Translations under genes and position numbers: made by a program
Assembly: GCF_963853765.1 (NCBI RefSeq)
Contig: NC_088858.1
Location: 30,876,001 to 30,940,000 of the forward strand
DNA: 64,000 nt
Source of the DNA: Magallana gigas
Lineage: Eukaryota
Reading direction: 5' to 3'
In this document: piece by piece, positions 7,842 to 57,266 of the stretch
Layout: each line of letters begins with the position of its first letter
Position numbering within the stretch: position 1 is the first letter of the stretch
Notes under the pieces: generated by a model
The model's input: the letters and a program-made list of their open reading frames with translations, nothing else
Told to the model about the DNA's origin: nothing
Database searches by the model: none

Positions 7842-8104
7842 TCACGTAGTTTCGCAAATATAAGGATAAAGTCTGTCACAGTCTTGGTCATTCCAATGGT
7901 AATGCTGACTAATACCCTTTTTCAGACAATTTTGACCGTCCTTGTTGTTGGGTTCACCGCCAGCAAAATTTGAGTATTGAATCAACTCTCCTTCCGGTTC
8001 CCATACCCACATTCCCTCTACAGTCCAATCAGAACCGCCCATCCATGCATGACCCGCTACAATTTATTTTGCCATTTAAATCCATGCGATTTATGTACTA
8101 TGAC

Positions 8105-8186
<82 letters not shown>

Positions 8187-9867
8187 CAAATATTGACTGG
8201 GATTGAGGGAAATATTGATTATATTAGCCCCCGAGGCACGAAATATTGCTCGACGCGAAGCGGAGGGCAATATTATCGTCCCAAGGGGGCTAATATAATC
8301 AAACTTGCCCGAAAACACAGTCAACATTTGTTTTGTTATATGAAGAAACAAACCAAAAATTAAGAAAGTAATTGAAAACAGATCACCGTAATTTTCTCAT
8401 CTCAACAAAGAATTCACGAATTCAATTTTGTGCAAAAGTTCATTTCCAAAATATCCTCAGCATCAAACGGTCACTGGTGATATTCCGCCGACCGTAAGAA
8501 TTAACATACAGATGTTCTACCTGATTTTACTTCACAGTATTTTGCAAATTCTTATATCCGTTATGATAGCAAACCGTCGCGCGTCCGTTATTTACTTGCC
8601 TTGACTGACTGTCTATTATGACGTCATCTTGTTTTGGAGTCGCGAAGAGTTATTTACGACATCGTTTACAAATCAACAAATCAGAGGCAATTATTTGAAA
8701 TAGAGGGAATGTTCTCTAGATATTATTCCTAGCCGGTCAATATAAAAAAAATATTGACCGGTCAATATTTTTTGGACGAGCTAATATTACAATTATTGAC
8801 TATTCGTCCATATAGAGTTAAATAGTANNNNNNNNNNNNNNNNNNNNNNNNNNNNNNNNNNNNNNNNNNNNNNNNNNNNNNNNNNNNNNNNNNNNNNNNN
8901 NNNNNNNNNNNNNNNNNNNNNNNNNNNNNNNNNNNNNNNNNNNNNNNNNNNNNNNNNNNNNNNNNNNNNNNNNNNNNNNNNNNNGTGATCGACCAAACGC
9001 TTTTATGAAGTTATGTCAGCTTTAACGCACGACACACGGCGCATGACGCACGAGGACGAACATAAACAGCTTGCAATAGGTCATCATAGTACTCATATGA
9101 CCTACAAATCAAATATTCAGCAACAATGTTAATAATTCTCACCTCCATTAGTTACCATTAGATTGGTTGTAAATGTATCCTCACTGGCACTGGTTACATG
9201 AACCAGGTATGCACCGTGTATCTCGCACATTTTCTGGGTACGGAAATAAAGAAATAATTGTATGCTTCATGTGAAACAGACTTTCATACTTCTGAATTTA
9301 TTATTTGTTCTTCCCTTTAAAACTAAACTGGAGTTTGCAACAAACACTTATTCAATTGATAAAACATCAAAAAACATATGCAAACCATCATTCAAAAAGC
9401 GATAGTTATGCCAAACCCATAGGGAGTAAAACAAACAAGAAAAATATGGCATGAGAAGGAGAATTTGAGTGGATACAGATGGAAAAATGTATACTTTTTA
9501 ATTTAGTATGAAAATTTTTAATTTATTTTGAAGTAGAAATATTCAAACTATCGTTTACCACTGACCATGCTATCCATCCATGATTCTTCCTCTAATGATA
9601 AATGATAGCAAGACGTGTTGAAAGTAGTCCATCCGGGGGGACACCCAAAAGCTGCAATGTAAAGACTTACCTTTTCACGATGAATGAATGATTTGTATAA
9701 ACATTTTGATTATTTTAAGAGAAGCGCGAAGGGATAAGTAAACAATAACAAAATTATTAGTAAAAGAAATTAAAAAAAAGCTTGATGAAGAAAAGGAAGA
9801 AAAATAAGTCTTACAGATTCTCACCTATATCAAGAAGGAAAAGTATACATCCAATGATCAGAGTCAT
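7842..9867 (-). CDS. CTL-1: perlucin-like secreted C-type lectin, EPN/WND type, ~144 aa
   Basis: Exons 9825-9867, 9566-9651, 9143-9233, 7842-8056 with GT-AG junctions in phases 1,0,1; signal peptide, CPPGW..SCY, WMGGSD, EPN, WND, six CTLD cysteines. A phase-2 donor overlaps the stop (AC|GTGAGA), so a short exon 5 is possible. Intron 3 contains an N-gap. Confidence 0.9.
8108..8180. repeat. (TA)n microsatellite in CTL-1 intron 3
   Basis: Uninterrupted TA run; source of the spurious YIYIYI ORFs. Confidence 0.95.
8193..8324. repeat. Palindromic (foldback) element with CGACGCGAAGCGGAGG core
   Basis: Imperfect ~57-bp arms TTGACTG...AATATTGC / GCAATATT...CAGTCAA around a GC-rich spacer; same core as 28793-28935. 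Confidence 0.7.
8828..8984. other. Assembly gap (N run)
   Basis: 157 N in CTL-1 intron 3. Confidence 0.99.
9024..9108 (+). mobile_element. Helentron/DINE-like terminal remnant
   Basis: GACGCACGA-like microrepeat followed by hairpin TAGGTCA...TGACCTA and A-run, an arrangement typical of non-autonomous Helentron ends; degenerate. Confidence 0.4.
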
Positions 9868-10992
9868 GCTAAATCCAGTTGTCTGTGTTACTATCAAACT
9901 ATTCATGCTGGTACGCATGTGCATACATTGAGGTAAGATAAAATACCATTTGGTCGATGTCGCTTAGTTTTAAAGATAACTAAATCACGTTCTCTAAGTA
10001 ATGCTAGTAGTGTCTAATGACACAAAATTAAGCTTAGAGTACATATACTTGTAATGCATTACTTTTCAAAATCTAATGTTCGCATTACAAGACATTTACA
10101 TGGCTTTGCATTACTTATTTATCCATATTCCTTTTTAAAATCGGGATGAATTGAAGAAATGAAATTGTACTTGATTTTAAGTTTTTTTAACGACAAAAAA
10201 ACCCCCAATTCTTTAGATAAAAATATATGAGTTGCATTATTTAAACAATTAAAAAATCCCTTTTAGCTATAACATGACAATTAGATACAATTTTTAAGAA
10301 CGTTGTTATTAAGAGTTAAGAATTATTAAAATAATCACTTTAATTAGTTGTGCATTCATTGAATGGACTATAACAACACAATAAGATACAATTTTCAAGA
10401 GTTTTGTTATCAAGAGTTTAAAATTATTAAAACAATTACTTTAATTAGTTGTGTATTCAATGAATGATTTACTGTGAAAAAAGTGTCAACAACACATAAT
10501 GCCTTTTGGATGATAAGTACCAAAACAATCTATTATTGAGAAGTGAATAAAACGATACACCCCTTCTTTTGGCTGTACTCATGAATCACAAAAGATGAAA
10601 GTTTTGAAACTGTGATGATCAGAGAATGCAATAAAAATCTTATGTAGAAATCATTAGATTTGAAATTACGCATGTATGATAAGGCAACTCTCAGCAATCG
10701 ATAGAGTAAAAATTCCTTTGATCAATATGACGTCACAATAAGCAGCATAATGTCATATTTTACTCAGAAACATGTCGATTTTAACTTTATATCTTGTTTA
10801 AATCATAAAAACTACAGGCATAGAATATCACTAGAAACTATTCTAACTGAATTTATCTTCGATTTCTCTGTATTACGTATAATTATCATTGATGACGTCA
10901 CAAGCATGTTTAATAGAGCAGATTATGTCGGGAGACAAATCATCGGAATGCAGGGTAAATAATGGCGAAATAAGACTTATTTAATGCAGATA

Positions 10993-14397: not shown

Positions 14398-14440
14398 CTA
14401 TATCAAGAAGGAAAAGTATACAGCCAATTACCATGGTCAT
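14398..14440 (-). other. Orphan CTL first exon with intact splice donor
   Basis: MTMVIGCILFLLDI, G|GTAAGTA, minus-strand TATAAA near 14492-14497; no exons 2-4 of its own before CTL-1 exon 1. Confidence 0.75.
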
Positions 14441-15819
14441 ATTGAAACCAGTTGTCTGTGTTACAATCACTATGCGATCTATTGCAAAACGTTTATATGA
14501 CTAGATCATCAAATTGGGATCGCTTGGTTTTAGATATAAGTAAATCTAAACATTAGATATACATATTGATATATTATTGATATTCATGCAGTTTCCAAAA
14601 TAACTTGTATTTATTTAAAAGAGAAATTTGCAGTTGTAGATGTGATTATACAGTGATATCACTAGATTTGCATGAAAATAGTCTGTAATATTGTTAAGTC
14701 GAGATATTTCATAGGGAGAATTTACCTTGTTTTCAAGGCTTGTTACAAGAAATCAATTAACAAACAAAATATCTGAATTTTTCAATAGAATGTCTTTATG
14801 ATAAGATATGATTTTTCCATCAGAACAATGATTTTTCCATCAGAACAATCATTAGCAAATTAAAAATGATGTACATATGTATACATCATATAAGTGTACA
14901 TATTTATTTTTGCTACCATTAGAATGAGACAAACCTGAAGCTCCATGAAAGTTGACATCAATAACACACGTACTTGAATTCCTATCGTCTGAATGATTTA
15001 TTTACAATTTACAAACACATGTTTAGCCAACTACTGGAGTTCCATCTTCATTACTGCAAATAACACATCTTAAAATGATAAATACAATTTAAGATTGATG
15101 CATGTTTAAAAAAAGGGAATTAATACACATTTAAATCGTTTCAAAAGTGTGTGATGATGCAGATGTGACAGTGTATTTTTCAAAAAAACAAGATAACACA
15201 ATGCATCTGTCTTTACATTAAAGTTGTTTTTATCAGTATACCAGATAGCTGTATAAAATCATATACCTGAGACCTATGTGATATAAATCAGCTGTTATTT
15301 TACGTACAGAGGTCACGTCCAATCTATCTTTTGAAGAATACGGTCATTACCATTCAGTAACAATCAAGGTTGTATTTAGTAATAACTGGCAGATGAATTA
15401 ATAAAAAAAAACCATGACATTATAGATATTTAAATATTCAGAACCTTTAAGCGAAGTTTGTAAATTTCCGCTGTTACAAAAATTCACACACTATGAGCTT
15501 GCGAATCTTAGCGTAAAATTTGCATGTGTAGTTTTGTTAGCCACAGTTTGATTGGTTGGATGTTCGAGAGCAGTAGCGTAACAGAACCGCTAAAGTTTAC
15601 TCAAATTGACTCTGTAACCAAATAATTCATGTACTAAGAAAATCGAGTAGTTGTTTCGAATCTATTTGTATCGTGTTTATTTTAAATTGTCACTATGTGT
15701 TGCTAACTTGTACTCACTGATAGTCTGATAATTTTATAAATCAAACCAAGAACAATTAAAATCTCTTTCCCCGGTAGAACAAAACGACTTAGTTAGATGC
15801 AACGAACAAAGAGAACATC

Positions 15820-16849
15820 TTACGTAGTTTCGCAAATATAAGGATAAGGTTGGTCGCAGTCTTTGTCATTCCAAAGGTAATTCAGACTAAGGCCCTTTTT
15901 TAGACAATTTTGACCGTCTCTGTTGTCGGGTTGATGGTGAGCAAAATTTGAGTATTGAATCAACTCTCCTTCCGGTTCCCATACCCACATTCCCTCTTCA
16001 GTCCAATCAGAACCGCCCAACCATGCGTTGTCCGCTACAATTTATTTTGCCGATTAAAGCTATACACGCTATAATTGGCGTCAATTTTTAATGACAGTAA
16101 AAATGCATGCTTTTGTTTACTTATAAAAGTTATCTTTATTCTATAAATTACAATGGTGAATTCCATCTTGTCACAAAGATATATATTTTTCTGGCAAGAA
16201 AGTAATGCCTTTTCATGAATATTAATGAAGGAAGGGCGATATAGACCTCTTGCGCATATCCGATGTAAATCAGGTGGCCGTTATTTTGTGCCTAATTACA
16301 TATATTTGTGTTGATTTTGTATATGCTTAACATTTTTTTATTTGTTATATATACATGCATTTTGAATGTAATACGTTCGTAATTCACGATGCCTGTTTAA
16401 ATAGGATAACATTCGCACGAACTAAAAATAGCACATAGGGGAAAGCACATAGGCCTACGTCATTGTTTAAGTGAAGTATAATATAAACATTCCTACACGC
16501 TCGTGTTTTTGATTTCTTTTGTTCAAATTAATGTAAGGGTCAATTTCTGCTAAATTGAAAAAAATTTTTATGTCAGTTCATTTGTGAAATTATAACAACT
16601 ATGACGGTTTTGACCCTCCACCTTTTTTGTATCATAGTCTAAAGTTAGCTGGCGAGATCAAGTGTTGGATTGATATCCATGAGGTGACATTACCTTCCTG
16701 GCAGAAAAATAAATATTTTTTATTGTTTATAACTTTGTTGCGTGATCGTTTTAAATATTATAATTGACATCATAAAGTTAGTTTTATAAGAAATCAAACA
16801 CATGAATTTAACAGCCTGTATAGCTTAAATGTACTATGACTATATACAT

Positions 16850-16921
<72 letters not shown>

Positions 16922-19900
16922 CACTGAAAAAACCAAGAACACTCGATATCCATAAGTGTCGGGGATCTGAAAGATCAGTAACATGCGATATGAAAAAGCG
17001 CTAAAAATAACCAACGACACGATCAATAAAGTGAAATATTATCAATTTTTAGTTACAATCCGTCCCTTCTTCAGGACAACAAAAACTATACAGTACATAT
17101 TGAGGGAGAAAAACATATACAAAATTAGCACTTAACTAAAAATCTAAATAATGGAAATACGTTAGATTAATTTAAATGTAGCAATAACATCTTATTGCTA
17201 CATTTAAATTAATCTAGCGTATTTACTTTATTTAGATTTTTAGCCGACTATAGTTTTTTTGCTCGTATTTTTTGGCGGCATAATCTTTTGAATAACAGTG
17301 TAGGCTATATTTTCAGCTTAAGGTACTTCACTACACCGAGACTTGTACTTTTTTAGACACTACGTCATAAGATGGCGATTTAAATGTTTTGTTAAACTAA
17401 CTGTATCAATCGATTCAGATGTGTATCGTCGTAGCTCAGTGGTTAAACAGGTCGAGACCACTATATTTTGTGACGTCGGCATAAATTTGCATACTAAATT
17501 AGCCATCTGTTTACTTTTATCGACAAACCAATCAGGTGAATGAGTTGCAAGGCATTGTGGGCTACTACAAGTTTCAGTGTATACAAAGCGTATTGAAAAT
17601 ATATACCATTTTGAATTGTCCTTTGGAAACTCATTATGAATGATTTTTCAGAATTTATGAAATTTATATGGACAGTTATGTCTGAACTTCAATTTCTATG
17701 CTCACATTTAAAAAGTATTGCATATGAGGACTTATATCAACCTATTTAAATACCCCATTGTCACTGTTCAAAAGAGAGGTACGTCCTATAGAACTAGAAG
17801 CAGCGAGTACCGTTTTTTCACATGATATCCCATATTTAAAGCAACATTATTAGAATCCGCGTTGATATTTTCTTCAGGGACATTCATCAGATTGCTTCAC
17901 GGACAAAATACTATATGCTGCACAGCTTGCGCTTCTGCGTTTGTATATTTGTGCATTTCTACTACCGTGGCTATTCACGTATGTTACAAATGTACAGTTA
18001 CCTGTATTTATTTCTAGTGCACAATGATAAAGTCCCCAATACACAACTGTGCAGTTTTTTCTTATCAAAACCTGTTTGTACTTGTATGCGTATGTTTGTC
18101 AGTCGTTTGATACTGATCATTTTTGAAGCAACAATTGATCAACTAAAACAACAGTATTTTTCAATGTGAGCATGGAACAAAGTTAATGGTACGTAATCTT
18201 TCCTTTTTTACCTTCTAAAGTAAAAATCAAGATGTACAAACATTCCGGCAAGCAATTAAATATTGTGAATAAAACAGACAAAAACCACGTGCGTTTGTTG
18301 AATCGTAGACACGTTGTAGACCGTCATGCATTGCAACTCATTCACTGGATTGGAGAATCTGTTTGACGAAAATACTGTCACGTGTTAAATAATGCTATCC
18401 ATATAAGGTAGTGTACCCGACCTGTTAAAGTATCAGGCTTGTGAACCGCAGGTCATGAGTTCGAATCCACCTGGGGCTTTTGTTTATGCTTACTGAATGA
18501 AATTTTTGAAAATACCATTTTTATCTAAAATTGCACAATTTTTCGCCTATTTGATAAATATACTTCTTATCCATCATGCTTTCTATCATAATCAAGTAAT
18601 GTTTTGCTGATATGAAAAACTATTTCAAGGTGTAGTGAGGAACCTTAAATCGTATCAAAGTTCTTTTAAGGAAGCTGACAATAGTTTTTATAGCTCGTTT
18701 TTGGTGCATAACCTTTTAGAATACAGTGTATTTAAACCTTAAAGAAAATGTTTTGATATCAAGTATGAAAGTTTTTTTTTTGAGGAAAATTTTATTTATG
18801 GAACAATGTTTAACTTTTTTGAAAAGTGATCAGTGCCATTGCGCATTATGACGTCATAATAAAAGAAGCAGTTAAAAGTGTACGCCTTTAAAAACCTATC
18901 TACATTGGTAATGCTTCAAATATATTTCAGAATTTTTTCCTTTTTTTATTTTGATATGACCCCTTATTTAAAAGCTAGATGGTAGAATTCGGTATTTATT
19001 TTTTTTATAAATAAGGTTAAAACTGATATTACTAATTGCACATTAAAATTTGAAGAAAATCGATGGTGTATTATTAAGGAAGGAGTCTTCTCGTTATCAA
19101 ACATAATTCTGATGATAAGAAATTCATGAAATTTTGACACATTCAAACGGATCATATTACTAAATGATTCTATCAGTTTAATCAAATCTGACCTTTTTGT
19201 TTTTTGCATAAAGGTCAGGTCAAGGTCACTACCTTTTTCCTCACGGTAAAGGATAATAAAAATAAGAATAGCTCTTCGTAGTTCTCTAGACATTTGTTTA
19301 AGATTTGAAGATTCTATTCTTCAATGAAATGATAGAATATAAGAATTTCTATCAGCTTATCCTTCTAAATTGGAATGAATATTTATACTAAAATTGATAT
19401 TGCTTAACCCGCATTTCCTCTAATTATCTTAAAGTTTGAAGAAATTTTGATTAAATTTTTATGCTTCCAATAATAAAATATTTCTGATTTGTATGTATTA
19501 TGGAGACTTTATGATAAGATATAAATTGACAGAAAAGAGAAAAGCTAATATATTGACCGTTTGATAAGAGAGAAAAACTGATTTTAGTGATTTTTTCTCA
19601 AAAATCAATGTATAGAAAGGGGGCTTTAAAACGCTTATAAAATGTAATTTGATAGGCAAATCATATTTTAAAAACATATTCTGAAACCCAAGTATCATAT
19701 CATTAGTTCACATTAGTAAAACAAATCCAACATAAATATTATTATTTTTAAAATGCTAAAACAGACTCATTAATCTGCAGCAATTGCGAAACATGCGATA
19801 TTTTCCTACGCCAATATTACGCCAAAAATGTAGTCCTTGTTAGATTCTATACATTGATTACTTTTTCTATGCCAAGTTGTGTGATAGTAAAAAAGAGAGG

Positions 19901-21647
19901 AAAATATACTATTTTAATTTCCTTTCATCTTGATTTAATGGACAATTAATCAAATTTACGTTTGACAAGTCGAAAACAAGAAAAGACTCCTTCCTTAAAT
20001 CTGCTTTGAGGTGCGCCAAATTTCATTATTCCATATATTCGTGCAGTAATATTTTTATTGTAAATGTATTTTGAGATGACCACTTAAAAGAATCAAACGG
20101 TAGATTGCGTTAAAACGTTGCATATAATCTATCAGAGTATCATATACCTGCGAGAAAGAGAATTTTGCTATCGTAGTTTTAACGCAACAAAGAAACTACA
20201 CGCCCAATTTGCCATCCTTTTTTGAGTCTAAACCATGACCTAATTTTTCTTGACTGTTACTCCGACGTTCATTATTTAATGCAAACATTAATTCATAAGG
20301 GGGAGGGAAGTTGGAAAAAATATCTATACCCATTGCTTCAAAGGTCAAAATCGTAGACGTTTGGTATACGGAGATCTTCTGGCCATTAAGGGGAAATAGA
20401 ATGTTGATCTCGTGAATTTTTTGATCATGTGGTCAAACATATTTGATCTATTAAGATGACATAAAAATTGCTCAGCAAAAATGTTAATATTATTCACCTT
20501 TATGAGTTATCAATAGATTGGTTGTAAAATTATCCTCACTGGCACTGTTTACGTGAACCAGGTATGCACCGTGTATCTCGCACATTTTCTAGGTACGAAA
20601 ATAAAGAAATGATTTAATGCTCCGTGTAAATCAAACTTTCATAATTCTGCATTTGTTATTTGGTCTTCATTATAACACTAAACTTGAGTTCACAACAAAC
20701 ACTGATTTACTTGTTATAACATTTGGATTATATGCACATGATTATATTTAAAAGAAAAGATAGCTGTGTCCAACGAATATGGAGTAAAATGAATAATTTA
20801 TAAAATTTGAAATTAGAAGAGGGTTTAAGAGTGTTTGATTGTTGTGGCCATATTTAGACTCTAATTATCACCTTAAAAAGGAGAGCACTTTATAAGAATA
20901 CAGGAAAATGTCCAAATCTAAAATGTAAAATATGTAGACTCTCTCTATACAAAATAATAGTTTCTATGTAAAGACATCATATCAAAAAAATAAGGGAAGA
21001 TCTTATGGCTAATTTGTTTACCACCAAGTCTTCTTGAGTAGATAAAAATGGAAAACAATTATATTCCTTTACTAAATATGAACAAGTTGAATTATTTCAT
21101 TATAAAGTAAAACTATCCAACTACTGTAAATTCCTTATTAAACTCCGCGTAAAATCGCGAGAAGCCCGTCTCGCGAATTATAAAATCTCGCTTTCATTTT
21201 TTCAGACATATATAAACTACATGAAACTATGATAAAATTTCGGCATTCGCGATTTTATGTTCTCGCGATTTGATGGAAAACCGTTGTATCGCAGAATTAA
21301 AGACTCGCGTAAAATAAGGAATCTACAGTATTGTATGACACTGACCATGCCATCAATCCACGATTTTTTATCTAATGATAAATGATAGCAAGACGTGTTG
21401 AAAGTAGTCCATCCGGGGCGACATCCTAATGCTGCAATGTAAAGATTTACCCCTTTCATAATGCGTGAATGGTTTGTTTGTATAGATTGTTTAAATTATT
21501 TTTACAAAAGTGAAAGTAAACATTAACAAAATTACTACTAAAAGAAAGAAATAAAAAAAATTGTTGAAAAAAAGTCAGAGAATAAGACACTAACAAATAC
21601 TCACCTATATCAAGAAGGAAAAGTAGGCATCCAATTATCATGGTCAT
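15820..21647 (-). CDS. CTL-2: perlucin-like C-type lectin, QPD/WND type, ~144 aa
   Basis: Exons 21605-21647, 21346-21431, 20498-20588, 15820-16034, all GT-AG and frame-consistent; exon lengths equal CTL-1; intron 3 expanded to 4.46 kb by insertions. Confidence 0.9.
16852..16916. repeat. (GA)n microsatellite
   Basis: Pure GA run in CTL-2 intron 3. Confidence 0.95.
16960..17090 (-). mobile_element. Penelope-like terminal remnant with degenerate hammerhead core
   Basis: Minus strand GTCCTGAAGAAGGGACGGATTGTAACTAAAA: CTGAAGA core present but stem II and GAAA are broken. Confidence 0.4.
17136..17243. repeat. ~108-bp near-perfect AT-rich palindrome
   Basis: TAGATTAATTTAAATGTAGCAATAA-CATC-TTATTGCTACATTTAAATTAATCTA; arms extend to ~52 bp with few mismatches. 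Confidence 0.85.
17322..18644. mobile_element. Kolobok-like element with perfect TTAA TSD and tRNA-like internal boxes
   Basis: TTAA|GGTACTTCACTACACC ... GGTGTAGTGAGGAACC|TTAA; A-box-like GTAGCTCAGTGGTTAA (~17430) and B-box-like GAGTTCGAATCC (~18457). Confidence 0.75.
18670..20200. mobile_element. Kolobok-like MITE (same family as 32814-33550), interrupted by a nested element; right end degenerate
   Basis: TTAA|GGAAGCTGAC start; internal segments align with 32820-33540 on both sides of the nested insert. Confidence 0.55.
19078..19994. mobile_element. Nested Kolobok-like MITE
   Basis: TTAA|GGAAGGAGTCTTCTCGTT ... AACAAGAAAAGACTCCTTCC|TTAA; removing it rejoins the host element. Confidence 0.75.
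21124..21328. mobile_element. Tc1/mariner-type MITE (TA TSD) in CTL-2 intron 2
   Basis: TA|CTGTAAATTCCTTATT ... AATAAGGAATCTACAG|TA; empty site with a single TA in CTL-1 intron 2 (~9549). Confidence 0.8.
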
Positions 21648-25062: not shown

Positions 25063-27116
25063 AATACTAGTTCCGCCACCAGATCAAAATTTACGTAGAA
25101 CATTAATAAAAGCATATCTACATGTAGGTAATGTAAACAATATTTAACAATGTAAACAATTTTCAAACAATGTTAACATGAAAACAGTTTAAAAGTTCGG
25201 TCACAAATATTAAAAACAAAGACAATTTACCAATAAATTTATAATTTTTTATTATTTGGAGGAAAGTATACTTTCGTAAAAACTTTCGTTTACGAAATGA
25301 TAATGGCAAGTCTGTGTTTGAAAGAATACATTAAATCTTTATCTGCAAAATTCCAAAATATTTCAACCAACTACTGGATTTCCAGGGTTATTTCTGAAAA
25401 ATTACAAAATGTGTTTATCGTAAATATTGCTTAACGGTTCATGTTTTAAAAATTAGATGATATCCCGCGCAAGCTCGGAAATTACCACTTTACACAATAA
25501 TATGAAAGAAAGCTAAATGTGTTTAACAATATATTTTGTTCATTTTTCAATACAAGTAGCTGTGTTCGAGATTTTTAAAAACCTTTCTTAACCTATTCTT
25601 TAAAATTGAATTTAAAAATACTTAATCAACAGCATGGCTTGATATTTAGAGAAGCGGGGAGGAATAAACAATGGATAATATATATATATGTACTTGGCCC
25701 TCATTCCAAATGGTACAGCTGACTGGAAAATTGTTTCGTATCCCTAAATTTTATTCTAAGGTCAAACACTATATTTTTTTATCACTGTCCCCAACATAAG
25801 ACTGTTTTGGTAAATTGGGGGAGGTTAATCACCCACCCTTAAACTTCTCCGTGTCATGCATACAGTAATTTATTTAAATAGACGTACATTTAGAACACAA
25901 TCTGTTCTTTGTTTACAAACTTATGTGTAAGATTTACAACCAATTTCTCGTGGTTGAAAAATAAATTAAAAGTAAAAGAAAACAACCCACGTTCCTTGAA
26001 AGTTCTTTCCATCAAAACTCAAACCGCATCATTTTGTTTTATTCATCACTTTTTTGTAATAGCCAGAAATATCCGATTCAAGGTATCTGCCCACGATGCA
26101 TGATGAACCCGTCATACGCTTTTTTGCCATAGCGTTCATTAGTATACCCGCGTTCCTGGTTACCCTGTTCTGAAAAGTTCTATTTCATTCTCACCTGATG
26201 TCGCGCTTACAAGCGTTCTATCCATCAAAACTAAAATCACGCATTCAAGAAAAGAATTGCTTTATTTCATTTCGTCAACGTTTGTCAAATATTAATTTCT
26301 ATGTAAACTCAAAGTAAGTTCCAAGGAAGTTCTCTTTACGTAATCAAATATCATTTTATTGCTTGTATATACATATTTGTACATGCATTTTGATGCTAAC
26401 TATCACTGAATTGGTTCAGCCAATACTATCTACCACCGTAATATCATAGATTTTTCTTAAATTTACATACAAAGATTTTAATAAGATGGAGTTGGCCCCC
26501 TCCCCCACTTTTCTGTGACCATTGAAACATTGAATTGAAAATAAGGAAACAAACAGTGAAATTGAAGTAAAAACTATACCAACTACCCCCCCCCCCCCCC
26601 ATCCCCCTCCCTCCCCCCCCCCCCCCCCCACGGATTAGAAATTTCCGGATTTTGAAAAGTAACCTCTTCCCCCCCTTTTTTTTGCTTGTCAATATTTTTT
26701 GGGATGAGGCTTGCCCCCTTTCAAAAACGATGCTACTTGCCTGATTTTGCTACTTTGGGATTCTTTATCGAACATTTCTTATTAATATCACCATAATTTC
26801 TTATCTTAAAATTGAATTTAATATTTATATCTTACGGACATCATATCACACGTGCTGAAATATTAAAGGTGTGAGCAGTTACTCTGGTACAGGCATTTTT
26901 TAGTCAATTGGCAAAATGTCTTATAAGTATTGATATTTGAATTAAAAGAGAGAATAAAAAATCATGTTGTTGCTTAAAGAATTTCAATTTTAAAAAACTC
27001 AAGATTGTTCAACGGGGAGCACTTTCTGGCATGCACAAAAAGCAACATCACACACTAAAATTTATTTTGAATCATATAAGACTACGTTAAGATATTGGAA
27101 TCAATTAAGAAAATTC

Positions 27117-35665: not shown

Positions 35666-35711
<46 letters not shown>

Positions 35712-36690: not shown

Positions 36691-36720
<30 letters not shown>

Positions 36721-38122: not shown

Positions 38123-39112
38123 TTACAGTTTGGCTTGCCTTTTCTCGCAAAGATATCGGCGCTGTTCGTCACAGTCATCGTCATCCCATTGGTGGTTTTG
38201 TGCTCTGATTGACAGGCAATTTTCACCATGGTAGTTGTTAGGCCTTCCATCGGCAAAGTTGGTATAGTTAAATTTGATTCCAAGGGGCTCCCATACCCAC
38301 TCACCTTCAACTGTCCAATCAGACCCACCAATCCAAAAGGAGTTACCTGCATTAGAAAAGTTTTCGCAATGAAAATATTTCCATATATACAATGTAACAT
38401 TTTTAATTGAGAAAACCTTCTTAAACATTAAAAAAAAATTTTATTTATGAAATCACATATCAAAAAATTGATTAATAAATAATATAAAAATAACATTCGA
38501 TTTAAATCTTTAAATCTTTAAATTACTTTGAGTATGGTGCATCAAGGAAACTATAAATCTGTTTTCCTCAGCATCCAAAATATCAGCTAGATAGGATCCA
38601 TGCACCTCACACATTTTCTGCAAAATAAAACATAACTTTTCTATAGCTAATCGTTACTATTTTCTCAGACGATTATTAAAAGTTGCCCCATTTCACCAAG
38701 ACTCAGTTTAAGTAAAATTTGAATGCACTCAAATGGACATTTAATATTATTGATTCGTTGCAAAAAAAAATCTAGCAATCAATCATACCATAGCATTTAT
38801 CCACGATTCATTTTCAGGCGACACATGATAACAAGAATCACGGTAGGGTGTCCAACCTACCGGGCAAGCAGTCCCTGCCATGAAATAAGTATCTATTTTA
38901 AAAATAAGGACAAACACAAAGCCATAAAATAGAAAAGTAATACTTCCGGTGATAATCTCTCATGAAATTTATTTTTGTTTTTTTTTCTGTTAGAATTTAT
39001 TGCTATAGAATAAATCAATTTTAACACAAATAACATGGGGGAAAATCAGTATTAATTGTACTGTACCTATTGTTATAAAACACGCAATAGAAATAAGAAT
39101 GCCTATCCTCAT
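38123..39112 (-). CDS. CTL-5: perlucin-like C-type lectin, RPN/WDD type, ~148 aa
   Basis: Exons 39067-39112 (MRIGILISIACFITI), 38789-38874, 38527-38617, 38123-38346; GT-AG, open frame, six Cys. Confidence 0.88.
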
Positions 39113-40522: not shown

Positions 40523-42555
40523 TCATCCAATCAAGTTGCCGGTAATATCATCCCTAAAAAGAAAACCTAAAAGTTCTTAATAAATATTAACATATATTAA
40601 TTCACATTAATGTCTAATAAATCTCAATGATGCTTATTCTGTCTGTATCAGTAATTAATAACATATACAATATATATAACTTCATGATTCTAAGTAAAAA
40701 TTGAATAGGTAAAACGCTTTCAATGAGCTTTATCAATATTTTTTTTTGGGGGGGGGGGGTTGGGAGAGATGGGAATTGTTTATTATTGTTTATGAAGAGG
40801 CTGATGACCACGTTGTTTTGGAATTTAGCAAGTGACATTTATTTATGATACTTACATTTTCTTACAAATATAAAAGTGCATATCATCGCAATTTCTGTCG
40901 CTCCAGTGTAAATTGGTATCAAGAAGCAGGCAGTCTTCATTGTGATGGTGATTGTTTGGTTCTCCCGGAGCGAAGTTCGTGTAATTCATTTTGTCACCGT
41001 AAGGTTCCCATAAAAAAGAACCCTCAAGGTTCCAGTCACTTCCTCCGAGCCAAGCAACATTGACTAAATATGGACAATAAAAGTCGTTTGATATCTAACA
41101 ATATATGTATACGTAATGTAATTTTATCCTTTCTCATATATACATTTTATTATATTTCACAGTACAAATTCAATGAAAGAAATTTGTACTATAAATGCGA
41201 TCATGCTGTCAACAGAATATTCTATTAACAATAGACAATTTAAAAAGCCAGTCCAACGATTCCTGAAAACTCGCATCAATAGAAATTACTCTAGTTTTGC
41301 AGTTCGTGGCTTACAACTTCTTCGCTAGCCAACGGTCGTTCCTTTTGAGTATCAGAAACCCTTTGCTAGTGAAGATGGACTCACAATAATGTTTATACAC
41401 TGTACTCTAAGATTTAAATGCGTATGTCAAAACAAATACTTGGTAAATGGTCTTCCCTAATAATTCCTTTATTTTCCTATAATTTCTTGAAAACATTAAA
41501 TGTAATTTTCCAACACGTCTAATTCTTAAATATAAAAGATAGCAGAAAAGGAATGTGTTTTGTCATGAGACAATTAAAAGCTACTTACAGTGTTTACTAT
41601 TCATAAGGCCTATTATGAAGTTTTCCTCCTCTTGGTGTAGTATGTAAGCTAAAACAGATCCATGTATTTGACACATATTCTACGGAAAAGGAAAAAGAGG
41701 CATTATAATAACACATGTATTTTTTTTTTCAGGGGGGGGGGGGTAATTTGGTTGTCCAGTGCATTATAAAAGACATGTTTTAATGCAATACTCAATTCTT
41801 TAAATAAACATGAAGAAATGAACAAGATTACACATGTTTATTCTTATTGTTTTTTTTCAAAACAAGTATGCCTTCGACAAACCATAGCATCAAACCACGA
41901 TTCTTTTTCCGCCGGCATATGATAACATGCAGAGCCATGCTTGATCCACCCTTCTGAACAAGTCTGTGCAACACCAACTGATAAATAACATCAATTTAAT
42001 ATACATTTTCTTTCAATTAATATCGATAAATATATAATTGATTTCAACCAACGGCCAATTCTGAATAAAAACCAAGATTTTTTTTCTTAAATTCCTAATT
42101 GTTTTTTAGAATGATGAAGTTAGCAGATTTTTCACCGCCGTTTAAATTGTTATTAAGTTATATTACAAAGTCCAATAATGCGTAAAACAAATTAGTATAG
42201 AAAGCAGCTTTTAATTCTGATTTATTTAGTATGAATCAAATAACTAGAAAACAGCACCTTTTTCTAAGACATGTATTTAGAAGAGTTTCGTTAACTCATC
42301 GTGATATCTATGTTCTGATCTTTTATTGATAAATTTAAGACAATGAAGATTATTTATACTGATATCAAACAAATAAGCCTACTCAATATTAAAACAACAA
42401 AATTCAAGTTATAATGCGCATGTTCACAAATTCAATACTGATAATTTTAGTCAGTTATGTGCTATCATAAAAGTGTTTCAACAAGATTATTTTTTATCAT
42501 TTGACTTACTTAGACAAATACACAAACCCAATCCTAGTTCCAGCTGGTATGACAT
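40523..42555 (-). CDS. CTL-6: perlucin-like C-type lectin, EPN/WSD type, 156 aa, five exons (missed by the ORF track)
   Basis: Exons 42510-42555 (MSYQLELGLGLCICL), 41883-41977, 41589-41679, 40856-41063, 40523-40553; total 471 nt in frame; WLGGSD, EPN, WSD, tail MDDITGNLIG. Confidence 0.88.
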
Positions 42556-44841: not shown

Positions 44842-47800
44842 TCAACCAATCAGATTACCAATAATATCATCCCTGCAAATAAAAACAAAAAATAAACTCA
44901 AAATAAATGCAGAAAATTAAGAAGTTGATGATCTCTTATAAATCACATAGCGCTGGCTGAAGAAACAGAAAAAACAAATAGAAGATCAATTTCCGTTGAT
45001 CATAACATATAATATATACCTTGTAATAGACAAAAATTATAAATCATTGTTAAACATGTGATAACTGTCTTTTACATTCGTTGGGACCGATTTTCGTGGA
45101 TGTAAGTATTTTTAATTTCGTGAATGCGTCGGTTATCAGTTTCAGTAACAAAACTGTTTTTGTATTCGTCGAAAATGCAAATTCTTGGGGGAGGAAGGTG
45201 GGAAAATAACCAAATTTACCACGAAAATCGATAATTGACCTATCATGAATTCTAATGATTTCACAGTATTAAAATTACAATGTGACTCAATTGTTTTAAC
45301 CCTTGATAACGACAACAGAAATAAAATAATAAATTCAAATTTTTGACACACGCAAGGTGCACGAGTCAATTATTCCTAGCCATCACTTTTCAGTCTACAA
45401 GTGGTTGAAACTCATTTGAAATTCCGTTTGGATGCAAATTCATACAAAGTGACTTGTCATTTGACAATCATTTGAATGTCACATGATTATTTTTAAAAAA
45501 TAATACCACGGGATTAACGCACAGCAATCTGCAGTGGTTCGATTTCTGCTGTCATGATTAAAGAACATTCATACAGAATGTGTTTTAATAAATAAACAAT
45601 TGATATCAGTTCTTGGAGACATATGGTTTGACGGAGCGGCCGCCTCTTAATAATATCTACCACGCTATGATATTTACATTCCTCTACGCTTCTGTGACAC
45701 GGAAGCAAAAGGGAAACTCAATGTTTACGTGTTGGGTCAAATAATATTGATATTTTTTCCAATTTAATCAGAATTAATTGCTTTTCAAAACGTTATTTTT
45801 GATAAAAAAAAAATCAATTTTATATGATAATATATAAAATATCGGGACAACATAAGTAATTGTGAAAATCTTGGGCTTGAAATTCACAATGGATCTTAGA
45901 TAGAAGTCGTATAATTTATCTTATCCAATAGCTAAACGAATTGAAATTCGCTTACATTTGCTTGCAAACATAAAAATGCGAGTCGCGACAGTTCCTATCG
46001 TTCCAAGTATACGTGTTATTTTTGAGTGAGGAGCCATCAATCAGGAGACAGTCCTCGGAGTTATTGAGGTCGTTGGGTTCTCCTGGAGAGAAATTTGTGT
46101 ACGTAATTTGGTCGCCGTACGGTTCCCATAAAAAAGATCCCTCAACATTCCAATCACTTCCGCCAATCCATACAATACTTTCTGAAAGTTGGCAAAGGAA
46201 AAGCGTAAATTAACCTTTCTTTGCAGCATTATCATTATGGTCGGTTTTTCAAGGAAAATAAAAATCGAAACTAAGTAAATTTCATACTAAAGACAAATAG
46301 AAACTATGTTAGTCTTGTGTTTGTCTTTTGATATAATGTGTGTACTCACTGTGTGTATTTTGCATAAGGCTAACTATATAGTTATGTTCCTCCTGACTTT
46401 CCACAGATGCTAAAACGGAGCCATGTATTTGACACATTTTCTGTAAAGTTGAAGAAAGATTAAAGTAAATATTGCATCACTTTCTTAGGAAAAAAAGGTA
46501 CCGCATTTCGATTCACCTCATTCAAATATAATATCTACTGTGGAATCATTAGAATTGACTGTGGATCAATGTTCGTGGTATTTTGGGGGAATCCCTCCGT
46601 ACAAATTTACATTATCGAGGAAACAAATTTAAAAAGTATTATTTTTGTTACTGGAACTGAAAACCGACATACTCATGAAATAACCCCCCTCTCAAAGCAC
46701 AAAGCCCTCAATCCGCAAAAATTGGCTACCAGAAATTTAAATGATTCCAAAGTAATACAATTCGGCAATTATTTTTTTAAATCATGAATTCAAATATATT
46801 TTATGAATATGTTTACCTTTGTATGCGTAAAAGTAGCTTTGGGCTCAGAAAATTGATTACTTTTATTTGTAAATAGTTTACAGAAAACGTTTGACAGCCA
46901 AATCTGTCATTAAACAAAATCAAATTTAATAATAATGTTGAACCCATTTTGTATTCAACTTGTAATTATACAAAGTACGTCTTTTTTTGTTAAAACAATT
47001 AAGCAGTTCCAATAACACCTTTTACAAGCACCTAGAAACAAATTCATATTGTTTGTGATTTGTTGGGAGAGAGGAAAAAGTCAATAATCCAATTCCCTAT
47101 TGTACTCTACGTTTACATTTCATCAAACTCTTATTTTTAAATTGAATTAGGATACTACGCTTAAATGCATATAATATATATCGAGGTGACACTAATTAAA
47201 ATTTATACTTGTATATACCATTCCATCGAACCAGGACTCTTCTTCTGGTCCCAAATGATAACAAGCTGAGCCATGTTTAATCCAGCCGTACGGACAACAC
47301 CATGCAACAGTAACTAACACAAAACAAATGACAGAGTTAAAATGACTTAGACACGAGTTTAGATCAACATTTTTATTTTTTTAGGATATAAAATGGTTTA
47401 CTTGCACATTTTGAATGAATAACCGAAATTTGAATGTTATAACTACATTATAAGAGAGATACAGAGGTAAGAATTCATTGTTATGTAAACAAAGCTCGCG
47501 TCTTATATTTGTTTACAAATAGTGTAACGTATGGAATTACCATTTCTTTGGCAAAATAACTCGTAAGAAACGAGGTAAACTTGTTCATTGTGTTTGTAAA
47601 ATATATCATCAATAGAAAAAAGCAACATTTGATTGAACCCTTAACAATAAAATACATATGTTAACAATAACAAGGCTTGAGCTTTGTTTACAAAACAAAG
47701 AATTCTAAACTCTGTATCTTCCTTGTAACCCAATATCTGACTTTCAAATTTTCAGAAAGCATTAAAAGCCCATATTAACCATTCTAAACATAAAAAATGG

Positions 47801-48120
47801 AAAAATAAAATTTGAAATTTTGAGCTCAAATCCAAGTCCAAGTCCCTTTAAGCAAAAATTACAAAAAACAAATATTGGAGGAACGATGTGATAGATATAT
47901 CTATGTATAGAAACAGTTGATAAACGATTTAGAAAGAAATAAACACATTGACCTATGTAAATGTCAAGTTAGATTCATTTCGGGTTTTTTTACAGATACA
48001 TCAATTCTAATAGTTGTATGCTCTTTATATTTAAAAAAAAACCCCTTATTAATCTAATTCATTGTTGTTAAACATACCTGCAAAACAGAGACCAAGAATT
48101 TGTAGACACCGTTGTGACAT
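44842..48120 (-). CDS. CTL-7: perlucin-like C-type lectin, EPN/WND type, 161 aa, five exons
   Basis: Exons 48078-48120, 47219-47313, 46350-46440, 45956-46181, 44842-44872; 486 nt in frame; tail MDDIIGNLIG. Confidence 0.88.
46538..46752. mobile_element. TA-flanked MITE in CTL-7 intron 2 (shared with CTL-8 at ~56203-56418)
   Basis: TA|CTGTGGAATCATT ... AATGATTCCAAAG|TA; present in both paralogs, so it predates their duplication. Confidence 0.65.
47341..47847. mobile_element. Kolobok-like MITE in CTL-7 intron 1, absent from CTL-8
   Basis: TTAA|AATGACTTAGACACG ... CCAAGTCCAAGTCCCT|TTAA; empty site with a single TTAA at ~57008. Confidence 0.75.
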
Positions 48121-54254: not shown

Positions 54255-57200
54255 TCAACCAATCAGATTACCGGTAATATCATCCCTGCAAATATAAAAT
54301 TAAAACCAGATTAAATGCAGAGAATAGAGAAGTTAAAAATCTCTTTGAAATCTTTAAAAAACATGAATGCTGAGTGAGGAAATAAGGAAAAAAAACAAAA
54401 TCAGATAAACTTTCGTTCGTCATAACATCTAAGGAATAGCTTGTACTAGACAAAAATTATAAAATATTGTTAAATATGTAATAACTATCCTTTACATTCG
54501 TTGGGTCCGATTTTCGTGGATGTAAGTATTTGTAATTTCGTGAATGCGTCGGTTATCAATTTTAGCAACAAAGCTGTTTTTGTTTTCGTCGAGAATGCAA
54601 ATTCGTGGGGAGAGGGGTGCAGGTGGGAAGATAACCAAATTTACAACAAAAATCGAAAATTGACCTATCATGGTATAATTTCACAGTATAAAATTTACAA
54701 CGTGACTCAAGTGTTTTAACCTTTGATAACTACAACAGAAATAAAGCGATAACACACGAAAGGTGTCAATTTTTCTTAATTATCACTTATCAGTTTACAA
54801 GTGGTTGAAACTCTGTCTGTTGTCATGATTAATGAACATTCATACTTTTAGTTCTTGAAGACATCGGGTTTGACGGAGCGGCCGCCTCTTTATGATATCT
54901 ACCACGCTATGATATTTACATTCCTCTACGCTTGAGTGACAATGATGCTAAAGGGAAAATCAAAGTTTATGTGTTGGGTCAACAAATATTAATATTTCCC
55001 CCTTTTAATCGGATTTAATTTGTTTTCAGTACGTTATTTTAAAAAAAAAAATCAATTTTATATGATAAAACACAGATAATTGTGAAAATCTTGGCTCGTG
55101 AATAGAAGTATTATAATTTATCTTATCCAATAGCTTAACGAATTGAAATAATTTACTTACATTTGCTTGCAAACATAAAAATACGAGTCGTGGCAGTTCC
55201 TATCGTCCCAGGTATACATGTTATTTTTGTGTGAGGAGCCATCAACCAGCAGACAGTCCTCGGAGTTATTGAGGTCGTTGGGTTCTCCAGGAGAGAAATT
55301 TGTGTACGTAATTTGGTCGCCGTACGGTTCCCAAACAAAAGATCCCTCAACATTCCAATCACTTCCGCCAAGCCATACAATACTTTCTGAAAGTTGGCAA
55401 TAGAAAAGCATAAGTTTACCTTTCTTTGCAGCATTATCATAACGGCCGGTTTTTCAAGCAAAATAAAAATCGAAACTAAATAAATTTCATAGTAGTTTAT
55501 ACGAATAGAAACAATATAAGTCCTGTGTTAGTCTAGTTATTTTGATGTTTAAATTTATTCCTATATTTATAACATATATTTATACTATCTTTTATGAATT
55601 TATTTATCTATAAGTTGAAGATCTATCTTTTAATATATATAATCAAAAAAAGGGTGAAAGGTGGTACATGTATCACACAGTATAAATAATAAAAAAAGAC
55701 AAAGAAAATGAACAATTCGAAAGTTTATATTCACCAGCGCTCTCTGGATTTTAACATCCTTCTTCAGGTGAACGTACATAGTTAAGATATAAGATAACTT
55801 CACCTGAAGAAGGATGTTAAAATCCAGAAAGCGCTAGTGAAAAATAACTTTGGAANNNNNNNNNNNNNNNNNNNNNNNNNNNNNNNNNNNNNNNNNNNNN
55901 NNNNNNNNNNNNNNNNNNNNNNNNNNNNNNNNNNNNNNNNNNNNNNNNNNNNNNNNNNNNNNNNNNNNNNNNNNNNNNNNNNNNNNNNNNNNNNNNNNNN
56001 NNNNNNNNNNNNNNNNNNNNNNNNNNNNNNTTTCGCATAAGGCTAACTATGAAGTTATGTTCCTCTTGATTTTCCACAGATGCTAATACGGAGCCATGAA
56101 TTTGACACATTTTCTGTAAAATTGTAGAAAGTAAACATCGCATCACTTGCTCAGAAAGGAAAACGGAGCGCATTTCGAATCACCTGATTCAGATTTCACA
56201 TCTACTGTGGAATCATTAGAATTCATTGTGAATCAATTTTCGTGGCATTTTGGAGGAATTCCTCCTTACAAATTTACATCATCGGCGAAACAAGTTTAAA
56301 AGATTTAAAAAGTGTTATTTTTTTGTTACTGAAACACACTCATGAAACAATCTCCCCCTGACAAAGCACATAACCCACAATCCACAAAAAATCGCTACCA
56401 GAAATTTAAATGATTCCACAATAATTCAATTCAGCAATTTTTTTTTTATATCATGCATTCAAATATACTCTATGAATATGTTTGCTTTTCTGTGCGTTAA
56501 GGTAGCTTTGTGCTCAAACAATTGATCACGTTTTATTGTTAACAGTTTACAGAAAACGTTTGACAGCCATGCATTTAATTTTTATAACTATGTTGAACTC
56601 ATTTTGGTATACAACTTGTAATTATACAATGTACATCATTTTTTGGTTAAAACAATTTATACAGTTATACTAACACCTTTTACAAGCACCTATCAACAAA
56701 TTCATACTGCTTGTGATTTGTAGAGAGGGAGGAAAATGCAGCCAACACCAAGTCAATAATCCAATTCCCTATTGTACACTACGTGAACATTTCATCAAAC
56801 TCTTAATTTTAATTTGAATTAGGATAATACAATAAATGCACATAAAATGTATCGAGGCGACAGCAATTAAAATTTATATTTGTATATACCATTCCATCGA
56901 ACCAGGACTCTTCTTCTGGTCCCAAATGATAACAAGCAGGTCCATGTTTAATCCAGCCGTACGGACAACACCATGCAACAGTAACTAACACAAGACAAAT
57001 GACATGATTAAACAAAAATTACTAACAAGTGTTGGAGGAACGATGTGATAGATATATGTTGAATAGAAATAGTTGATAAACGATTAAGAGAGTATCATAA
57101 ACCAAGACCCATGTAAAAGTCAAGTTAGATTCATCTCGTTTTCTGTAGATGCATAAATTCCAATAGTCATATGCTCTTAAATTTGATTACAAAATTCAAA

Positions 57201-57266
57201 ATTATTCATTGTTTTAAACATACCTGCAAAACAGAGCCCAAGAATCTGTAGACACTGTTGTGACAT
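54255..57266 (-). CDS. CTL-8: perlucin-like C-type lectin, EPN/WDD type, five exons; end of exon 3 in a gap
   Basis: Exons 57224-57266, 56890-56984, ~56023-56113 (last ~8 nt in N-gap), 55161-55386, 54255-54285; close paralog of CTL-7; tail MDDITGNLIG. Confidence 0.85.
55799..55842 (+). ncRNA. Minimal type-I hammerhead-ribozyme-like motif (PLE type), one arm of an inverted repeat
   Basis: Stem I TTCAC/GTGAA, core CTGAAGA, stem II GGAT-GTTAAA-ATCC flanked by extra A residues, GAAA, palindromic stem III GCGC, TA cleavage site; inverted copy at 55731-55772. Confidence 0.55.
55856..56030. other. Assembly gap (N run)
   Basis: 175 N covering the 3' end of CTL-8 exon 3. Confidence 0.99.

Follow-up and report, generated by a model that had tools for sequence, protein, structure and literature searches.

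The 64,000-nucleotide stretch of the Magallana gigas genome considered here (contig C6:30876001-30940000, taken from a 56.9-Mb chromosome record and referred to below as the window) has a G+C content of 31%, includes four runs of N, and very probably holds most of a head-to-tail, minus-strand array of at least 11 small, secreted, single-domain C-type lectin (CTL) genes. A six-frame scan of the window found exactly eight frames free of stops in which an [EQKR]P[ND] motif occurs together with W[NDS]D, and the minus strand carries all of them. Each of these eight fourth-exon pieces matched the Pfam family Lectin_C, with E values from 4e-4 to 1e-9; scored alone against the PF00059 profile, seven of the eight gave 29-39 bits, while the remaining piece, that of the frame-cut CTL-3, gave 21.5 against a cut-off of 22.6. 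The same domain is present in the full-length RefSeq and UniRef proteins of the array, and RefSeq already names these genes perlucin or perlucin-like. Searching the whole assembly with exon 4 of CTL-4 found three further same-strand members immediately to the left of the window, bearing the motifs EPD/WND (CTL-0), QPD/WKD and QPD/WLD and the same exon plan as the genes inside it, giving a total of at least 11 same-strand genes within about 66 kb and six types of first motif. Beyond the array, the next match to this exon on the contig is 2.4 Mb away.

Gene models were built with a splice-site enumerator and inspection by eye. The genes are as follows, with exons given in order of transcription, so that the last interval in each entry is the terminal exon, and with the positions of the two motifs.

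100..181, minus strand: first exon of CTL-0 (EPD/WND), XP_034323721.2 'perlucin', the other exons of which lie left of the window.
5752..9924, minus strand: CTL-1 (EPN/WND); exons 9924-9825, 9651-9566, 9233-9143, 8056-7846 and 5782-5752; EPN 7955-7947, WND 7895-7887; equal to XP_034323723.2, 'perlucin-like protein isoform X1'.
14398..14440, minus strand: distal alternative first exon of CTL-1, with signal peptide MTMVIGCILFLLDI; N-terminus of isoform X2, XP_034323724.2.
15023..21647, minus strand: CTL-2 (QPD/WND); exons 21647-21605, 21431-21346, 20588-20498, 16034-15824 and 15053-15023; QPD 15933-15925, WND 15873-15865; equal to XP_065944646.1.
25363..28660, minus strand: CTL-3 (QPN/WND), out of frame; exons 28660-28618, 28354-28269, 27977-27887, 27330-27121 (210 nt) and 25393-25363; QPN 27230-27222, WND 27170-27162.
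31962..35955, minus strand: CTL-4 (KPD/WND); exons 35955-35913, 35634-35549, 34363-34273, 32449-32239 and 31992-31962; KPD 32348-32340, WND 32288-32280; equal to XP_011453213.3, 'perlucin'.
37398..39112, minus strand: CTL-5 (RPN/WDD); exons 39112-39067, 38874-38789, 38617-38527, 38346-38123 (to 38127 if spliced) and the candidate 37431-37398; RPN 38245-38237, WDD 38188-38180.
40523..42555, minus strand: CTL-6 (EPN/WSD), a predicted model; exons 42555-42510, 41977-41883, 41679-41589, 41063-40856 and 40553-40523; EPN 40962-40954, WSD 40905-40897.
44842..48120, minus strand: CTL-7 (EPN/WND); exons 48120-48078, 47313-47219, 46440-46350, 46181-45956 and 44872-44842; EPN 46080-46072, WND 46005-45997; equal to XP_011417968.3.
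54255..57266, minus strand: CTL-8 (EPN/WDD); exons 57266-57224, 56984-56890, 56113-56031 (cut by a gap), 55386-55161 and 54285-54255; EPN 55285-55277, WDD 55210-55202.

These genes follow a common plan, comprising a signal-peptide exon, two exons encoding the N-terminal half of the domain, a loop exon and a short exon ending in a Gly codon. Exon 1 contributes 43-46 coding nt, with a longer alternative start in CTL-1; exon 2 has a length of 86 nt (CTL-1 to CTL-5) or 95 nt (CTL-6 to CTL-8); exon 3, wherever it is complete, has 91 nt; and exon 4, of 208-226 nt, holds the entire Ca2+/sugar loop together with both motifs. Intron phases are 1-0-1-2 across the array. A GT donor (ACgtgag, ATgtaag) overlaps the in-frame stop that closes exon 4, and in seven genes a phase-2 intron leads from there to a fifth exon of 31 nt ending in ...PVVG, ...PAVG or ...GNLIG and a stop; the candidate in CTL-5 (37431-37398) is 34 nt long and shares an ACCGGCA...GGATGA core with the exon of CTL-6. 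The products of the terminal exons end in Gly (..NPVVG, ..NPAVG, ..TGILG, ..GNLIG), as do the CTL-5 orthologues of Ostrea edulis and C. virginica (..FLFG, ..NVFG), a C-terminal Gly being the usual substrate of peptide amidation. Six aligned cysteines (the long-form C0, C0' and C1-C4) and the motif W(I/L/M)GGSDW are found in all 11 genes, and CTL-7 and CTL-8 have an extra, seventh Cys within WCCPYGW. A profile of the array family matches solved C-type lectin-like domains (CTLDs) with E values down to 1e-22 for single domains, and the products would be secreted glycan binders.

An initial annotation of this DNA, made from the letters alone, had described a tandem CTL array with varied motifs at Ca2+ site 2, and this description was borne out, the family being a duplicating one of glycan-recognition-type domains. 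The eight motif pairs listed there all occur as stated, on the minus strand and in stop-free exon-4 frames, and the shared exon phases (1-0-1) and six cysteines were likewise recovered, with the addition of the seventh Cys in CTL-7 and CTL-8. The count of eight assembled genes stands as eight exon-4 frames with Lectin_C, but CTL-3 is frameshifted, exon 3 of CTL-8 is cut by a gap, and the array has at least 11 members. The genes had also been taken to end at the exon-4 stop; as this stop overlaps a splice donor and a further exon was found, CTL-1, for instance, ends at 5752 rather than 7842.

The spliced models of CTL-1, CTL-2, CTL-4 and CTL-7 are letter-identical to RefSeq proteins. By exact look-up, the 156-residue product of the CTL-6 model is not in the protein collection, and this model is unconfirmed. 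CTL-5 is 97% identical to UniRef entry A0A8W8HZ22. At the end of its exon 4 (38123-38130) the window reads ..QAKL followed by a stop, the UniRef protein ..QAKLYF, and an open reading frame from Logan ..QAKLHF..; no acceptor giving the 'LYF' C-terminus was found in the window, and assemblies or models apparently differ in the 3' end of CTL-5. Three assembly gaps lie in or between these genes.

8828-8984: gap inside intron 3 of CTL-1 (exon 3 ends at 9143 and exon 4 starts at 8056), leaving the coding sequence untouched.
43514-43643: intergenic gap between exon 5 of CTL-7 (44842) and exon 1 of CTL-6 (42555).
55856..56030: gap removing the end and the donor of CTL-8 exon 3.

Since the last of these cuts exon 3 of CTL-8, which shows 83 nt where the paralogues all have 91 nt and the donor of which lies inside the gap, the continuity and frame of this gene across exons 3-4 are not demonstrable from the window; its motifs are in exon 4 and unaffected. 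Both this gap and the CTL-3 deletion were treated as N or X in computations. A short perfect inverted repeat (..cttcaggtgaag.. / ..cacctgaagaag..ggatgttaaaatccag..) adjoins the gap at 55770-55850, in intron 3 of CTL-8.

The gaps at 43514-43643 and 55856-56030 flank the region of CTL-7 and CTL-8, and oysters are highly heterozygous, so part of the array might be an assembly artefact in which haplotigs were placed in tandem near gaps, CTL-8 being, for example, an allele of CTL-7. This is very hard to credit: with a dS of 0.16 and non-coding flanks of only 84% identity, the two genes diverge far more than alleles do; two distinct proteins of the CTL-7/CTL-8 cluster exist in RefSeq and in C. angulata each; and the members of the array are ordered on a single strand with distinct intergenic sequence. 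On the first two of these grounds, CTL-7 and CTL-8 were rejected as haplotigs.

The history of the family is written in a graded series of divergences. A maximum-likelihood (ML) tree has four well-supported groups: the QPD pair at the left; CTL-6 with CTL-7 and CTL-8; CTL-5 with its orthologues; and a group termed clade A, made up of the sub-clades (CTL-3, CTL-4) and (CTL-0, (CTL-1, CTL-2)) and of two C. virginica genes. Because the species form separate sub-clades, the clade-A copies multiplied separately in M. gigas and C. virginica. Across the array dS ranges from 0.16 to saturated, with values of 0.16-0.35 for young duplicates. The array grew by birth-and-death tandem duplication, and comprises three old lineages (CTL-6/7/8; CTL-5; CTL-0 to CTL-4) and the QPD pair; all the marks of such a process are present, namely same-strand adjacent paralogues, graded divergence, lineage-specific duplicates, and relics or pseudogenes. 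The 'death' side is represented by the frameshifted allele of CTL-3 described below and by the following remnants.

5131..5173, minus strand: relic, third copy of the clade-A first exon, between CTL-1 and CTL-0, with a donor of GC rather than GT and a 3-nt loss; dead unless it serves CTL-0 as an alternative first exon with a GC donor.
29817..30363, minus strand: decayed CTL-5-like fragments, of which 30070-29817 shares 82% identity with exon 2 of CTL-5 plus flanking sequence, and 30363-30190 is an exon-4-like frame with stops.

The CTL-5 orthologue of C. virginica is likewise followed by a clade-A lectin gene. Upstream of it, at 1-4064 of CM130319.1, is a protein-kinase gene, in a position taken in M. 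gigas by CTL-6 to CTL-8; an insertion or relocation of the CTL-6/7/8 block may have occurred in one lineage.

Exon 4 of CTL-3 has 210 nt instead of the expected 211, one G of TGGGTATGG being missing between 27281 and 27280. A stop therefore follows 26 codons on, before the QPN motif, and the assembled gene is not intact. The protein is intact in C. angulata and in two further assemblies of M. gigas (P0015, P0016, P0014), and no protein of the CTL-3 cluster is found on this chromosome record. Read evidence, in the form of contigs and a 1% sample, covers positions 27100-33099 of the window, the side of CTL-3 and CTL-4. An RNA contig from run X17 covers CTL-3 exon 4 exactly (27121-27330) and joins 27330-27887, 27977-28269 and 28354-28618, which are introns 3, 2 and 1 of this gene, with GT..AG borders on the minus strand. 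In this contig the frame is restored by an additional base behind 27280, and the match breaks off at the exon-4 donor, leaving 14 unmatched letters, which is what splicing to exon 5 would produce. As the contig is both spliced and in frame, an intact CTL-3 allele is expressed in oysters. DNA contigs of run X3, by comparison, carry the deletion and are identical to the window over kilobases, and X3 may be the assembly's own individual. The reference haplotype carries a one-base null allele of CTL-3 or, less likely, an error shared with X3. A null allele beside an expressed intact one illustrates, on a small scale, the presence/absence-type variation of oyster immune genes, and the deletion is a caution for the annotation of this assembly.

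Confirmation of the gene models by RNA, which the initial annotation had called for, was thus partial: transcription and introns 1-3 of CTL-3 were supported by X17, but no spliced RNA of CTL-4 was seen in three runs. The sole RNA signal from CTL-4 is one unspliced 153-nt contig of run X15 with a depth of 3.7, no deeper than intergenic contigs of the same run (30424-31120). Within the same region, the stretches 28700-29300, 29700-29900, 27300-27700 and 32700-33099 reach a word depth in DNA contigs of up to about 145,000, with depth in RNA too and many inverted or skipping joints. These deep stretches are high-copy repeats or transposable elements, situated in intron 3 of CTL-3 (27300-27700), in the spacers upstream of CTL-3 and in intron 3 of CTL-4. 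Simpler repeats are also present in the array: microsatellites of (TA)40 at 8108-8186 in CTL-1 intron 3, (GA)33 at 16852-16917 in CTL-2 intron 3 and (AG)20 at 35671-35710 in CTL-4 intron 1, and a 101-bp tandem duplication at 10267-10466, just upstream of the proximal first exon of CTL-1. To the right of the array, minus-strand EF-hand frames at 59878-60222 and 63402-63683 (EF-hand_7, E value 5e-20) belong to a calmodulin-like gene.

The motifs themselves differ by few changes. The first position is encoded by GAA (E), CAA or CAG (Q), AAA (K, in CTL-4) or AGG (R, in CTL-5), the third by AAC (N) or by GAC or GAT (D), and the variants of the clade-A genes in the window are one nucleotide step apart. 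CTL-1 (EPN) and CTL-2 (QPD), for instance, are 78% identical, and their motifs differ by GAA to CAA and AAC to GAC.

Whether such differences reflect selection on the binding loop was assessed from ratios of nonsynonymous to synonymous change (omega), taking the loop as the stretch from EPEG to WND and estimating ML omega under GY94 in IQ-TREE. Pairwise Nei-Gojobori values were 0.16-0.60, and the loop did not stand out. For all 11 genes, ML omega was 0.277 in the carbohydrate-recognition domain (CRD), 0.222 in the loop and 0.277 in the rest; for clade A the corresponding values were 0.576, 0.569 and 0.579. Site models M1a and M2a were compared using an implementation of our own that reproduces the M0 values of IQ-TREE, with clade A represented by five sequences (CTL-0 to CTL-4). 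Across all 11 genes this comparison found no positive class (twice the log-likelihood difference, 2dlnL, 2.6, not significant). In clade A, with branch lengths re-optimised, M2a fitted a class with omega of ~2.4 comprising ~29% of sites (2dlnL 11.9, p 0.003). Among the sites of high posterior in this clade are residues next to the motif and in the stretch leading up to WND, with as many elsewhere in the domain; enrichment in the loop has p values of 0.045, 0.30 and 0.63 at posteriors of 0.8, 0.9 and 0.95, respectively.

Clade A is also a mosaic. Divergence between CTL-0 and CTL-1 is 6.9% over exons 2-3 but rises to 25% in exon 4; between CTL-1 and CTL-2 it stands at 10-12% in either part. In every pair exon 4 is more diverged than exons 2-3, at synonymous sites too. 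This pattern points to conversion or unequal crossing-over inside the array. Mosaics produced by recombination inflate M2a tests, and the clade-A result is confounded for this reason. A further observation concerns alleles of CTL-4: over exon 4 (32239-32449), the oldest RefSeq allele, XP_011453213.1, and the window differ at four residues, all four within the 38-residue loop and one of them matching the state of CTL-3, which suggests either loop-focused allelic variation or a small conversion tract.

A repertoire shaped by an arms race, with diversifying selection on the sugar-binding loop driving the motif differences, would account for the better fit of M2a in clade A and its sizeable class of sites with omega of ~2.4, for the posteriors of 0.8-0.97 at motif-flanking residues and at residues between the second core Cys and WND, for the loop enrichment at posteriors of at least 0.8, for the confinement of the CTL-4 allelic differences to the loop and for the greater divergence of exon 4. 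It is nevertheless judged unlikely, as omega in the loop does not exceed that of the rest in either pairwise or ML estimates, the enrichment is gone at posteriors of 0.9 and 0.95, and the test on the whole family is not significant. The clade-A test comprises only five sequences and our own implementation, and is inflated by the mosaic exemplified by CTL-0 and CTL-1; moreover, the raised synonymous divergence of exon 4 points to conversion of the 5' half of the genes, not to selection. The repertoire had been proposed in the initial annotation to be locally diversifying, a proposal to be dropped if the binding loop had no excess of nonsynonymous change. The codon models give largely that outcome, with loop omega of 0.22 against 0.28 for the 11 genes and 0.57 against 0.58 for clade A. 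The family as a whole is under purifying constraint; the young clade shows relaxation, and any positive selection there is modest and diffuse at best.

Two copies in the window, CTL-4 and CTL-5, have a basic residue in the first motif. Orthologues of CTL-5 have RPN/WDD in Ostrea edulis and Saccostrea and KPN/WDD, with codon AAG, in C. virginica, and the pattern ENCLSIR...WDDDDCDE.R.Y is kept in all the CTL-5 orthologues found. Between CTL-5 and its C. virginica counterpart, 89 of 124 CRD residues are identical, with dN of 0.18, dS of about 2.5 and omega of about 0.07. Since R or K is kept in four genera and omega is low, the RPN of CTL-5 is an old, selectively maintained state; its attribution to local diversification in the initial annotation does not hold for what is an ancient orthologue under strong purifying selection. 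The KPD of CTL-4 recurs in C. angulata and in two further assemblies of M. gigas, these lineages being very close, and the second clade-A gene of C. virginica has RPN with codon CGC. As the codons AGG/AAG, CGC and AAA are on separate lineages, the basic residue arose at least three times in the family.

Ca2+ site 2 has five canonical ligands, namely the E/Q and the N/D of the first motif, the Glu preceding the second core Cys, and the N and D of WND. By alignment, these form a complete set in CTL-3 (if in frame), CTL-6 and CTL-7. Departures consist of Gln for Glu (GQNC) in CTL-1 and CTL-2, WDD in CTL-8 and CTL-5, and WSD in CTL-6. CTL-4, with Lys, and CTL-5, with Arg, fail at the first site-2 ligand and keep the remaining ones. 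An AlphaFold2 (AF2) model of a CTL-5 allele has a predicted local distance difference test (pLDDT) score of 71.9, with 83-93 in the core, and the top 50 PDB matches in a Foldseek search with the CTL-5 model are all CTLDs (probability 1.0, template modelling (TM) scores 0.58-0.74).

Could the Lys and Arg copies, CTL-4 above all, simply be decaying or non-lectin genes in which the basic residue is a tolerated loss of function? Transcription of CTL-4 was not seen in the three RNA runs, the adjacent CTL-3 is already frameshifted in this haplotype, relaxed constraint would fit the clade-A omega of 0.58, and the KPD motif of the clam lectin SPL-2 is called 'silent' in a review (PMC12842671). Decay is nonetheless improbable, given that omega of CTL-5 against C. 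virginica is about 0.07 and that R/K, WDDDDCD and all cysteines are kept in four genera. An intact CTL-4 whose splice sites are canonical is present in C. angulata and in three assemblies of M. gigas; the other site-2 ligands (the Glu of GENC, and WND) are kept; and a basic residue arose no fewer than three times with different codons (AGG/AAG, CGC, AAA).

In CTLDs, the Glu or Gln of an EPN-type motif ligates Ca2+ and hydrogen-bonds the sugar. By this established chemistry, Lys or Arg at the first motif position should abolish Ca2+ site 2 or rearrange it. The E/Q-P-N/D copies of the array would use Ca2+ site 2 for sugar binding and differ in their preferences, and the copies with Lys (CTL-4) or Arg (CTL-5), a residue unable to ligate Ca2+, would probably bind either without site-2 Ca2+ or via a shifted site.

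Several points weigh against this account of the array as a set of glycan binders differing at site 2. Transcription is seen only for CTL-3, within the read-covered positions 27100-33099, and CTL-4 RNA is found neither in X17 nor in 1.9 Gb of X21 poly(A) reads, although contigs and a 1% sample cannot prove absence. The loop of the AF2 model (residues 83-111) has pLDDT below 50, and the Arg side chain is not placed. The M2a result in clade A leaves room for real positive selection. CTL-4 and CTL-5 have no special kinship to SPL-1/2, the clam lectins compared with them below, and that analogy rests on one residue. Finally, the motif predicts sugar poorly in bivalves, where, for example, EPD lectins bind mannose (PMC12842671).

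The names perlucin and perlucin-like given by RefSeq raise the prospect that these genes encode shell-matrix (biomineralisation) proteins akin to abalone perlucin rather than immune lectins, and mollusc CTLs with dual roles in immunity and mineralisation are known (PMC11772184). The RefSeq name, however, derives from automatic similarity, a literature search on these accessions gave no mantle or shell-proteome evidence, and the only transcript evidence comes from whole-oyster metatranscriptomes in which the tissue is not specified; a primary role in the shell is judged unlikely. A literature search for 'perlucin-like' expression likewise gave nothing gene-specific, and the search on the accessions found no description of this cluster, its micro-exon, the motif series, the CTL-3 null allele or the R/KPN-WDDDD conservation of CTL-5.

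Expanded, motif-variable CTL families are a textbook feature of bivalve innate immunity, and the array itself is ordinary and expected for these animals, its genes being already annotated. They are the mollusc perlucin-like single-CRD CTLs (XP_034323723, XP_065944646, XP_011453213, XP_011417968 and others), with which they share a signal peptide and one long-form CTLD of ~130 residues. The array arose by tandem duplication, as did other oyster innate-immune families, for which such expansion is established, C-type lectins included (PMC4346834). Similarly, the variants QPN, EPD, KPD, RPD, WSD and WDD are tabulated for bivalve CTLs in a review (PMC12842671). In the multi-CRD lectins of scallops and razor clams (AiCTL-9, CfLec-3/4, ScCTL-1), sets of YPT-, EPD-, EPN- and QPN-type CRDs give breadth of recognition, the same principle as here (PMC12842671, PMC4432315); those CRDs are joined in one polypeptide, whereas the members of the array are separate tandem genes, each with its own promoter and signal peptide. 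Codakine of Codakia orbicularis (PDB 2VUV), a bivalve EPN/WND CTL with a single CRD, matches the array family profile with an E value of 4e-18, but is only a distant relative, without a tandem series or basic variants. A profile search of 1.84 billion representatives returned 46,717 matches, of which the best 150 were giant multi-CRD proteins, and was uninformative for close relatives or a census of motifs.

The array is a compact natural experiment in which closely related paralogues on one scaffold, a single nucleotide apart at each of the two specificity positions, have E, Q, K or R at the first and N or D at the second, and is thus good material for testing the reach of the EPN/QPD rule in molluscs. 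The motifs of CTL-1 and CTL-2 differ by exactly the two changes that swap mannose-binding protein A (MBP-A) between mannose-type and galactose-type, a specificity switch between EPN and QPD reportedly described by Drickamer in 1992. MBP-A, however, has the Ca2+ ligand Glu193 (GENC), where both oyster proteins have Gln (GQNC).

For the basic copies, the nearest parallel is provided by SPL-1/2 of Saxidomus purpuratus, which have RPD/KPD with WND. Their motif is 'silent' and GlcNAc/GalNAc (N-acetylglucosamine/N-acetylgalactosamine) is bound independently of Ca2+ at a shifted site (PDB 6A7S), work that a review credits to Unno et al. 2019 (PMC12842671). In SPL-2 this site involves Asp106, Asp118, Tyr66 and His120, and the lectin is a disulfide-linked dimer. 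The features in common are those of bivalve CTLDs with R or K at the first position and a retained Trp-x-Asp, which are found in CTL-4 (KPD/WND) and CTL-5 (RPN/WDD); CTL-5 differs in having RPN and WDD in place of RPD and WND. SPL chains are absent from the PDB matches of the exon-4 peptides (49 for CTL-4, 88 for CTL-5) and from the best 60 of the family profile, and in the tree the basic residue arose inside the oyster family, independently of SPL-1/2. From these comparisons of sequence, the likeness of CTL-4 and CTL-5 to SPL appears to be convergent and limited to that position. More tentatively, CTL-5 might represent an ancient, oyster-wide class of CTLs in which R or K permanently replaces Glu beside an invariant block of acidic and basic residues (W-D-D-D-D-C-D-E-x-R), a salt bridge stands in for Ca2+ and the ligand, possibly anionic, is recognised without calcium, all independently of SPL-1/2; the young Q and then K/E copies would form a one-step series, with EPN maybe regained from an ancestor of QPN/WDD type. 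The idea of the initial annotation that the K/R copies may act independently of Ca2+ has a solved precedent in SPL-1/2, and the R/KPN-WDDDD orthologue is a candidate for a second, independent Ca2+-independent CTLD in bivalves.

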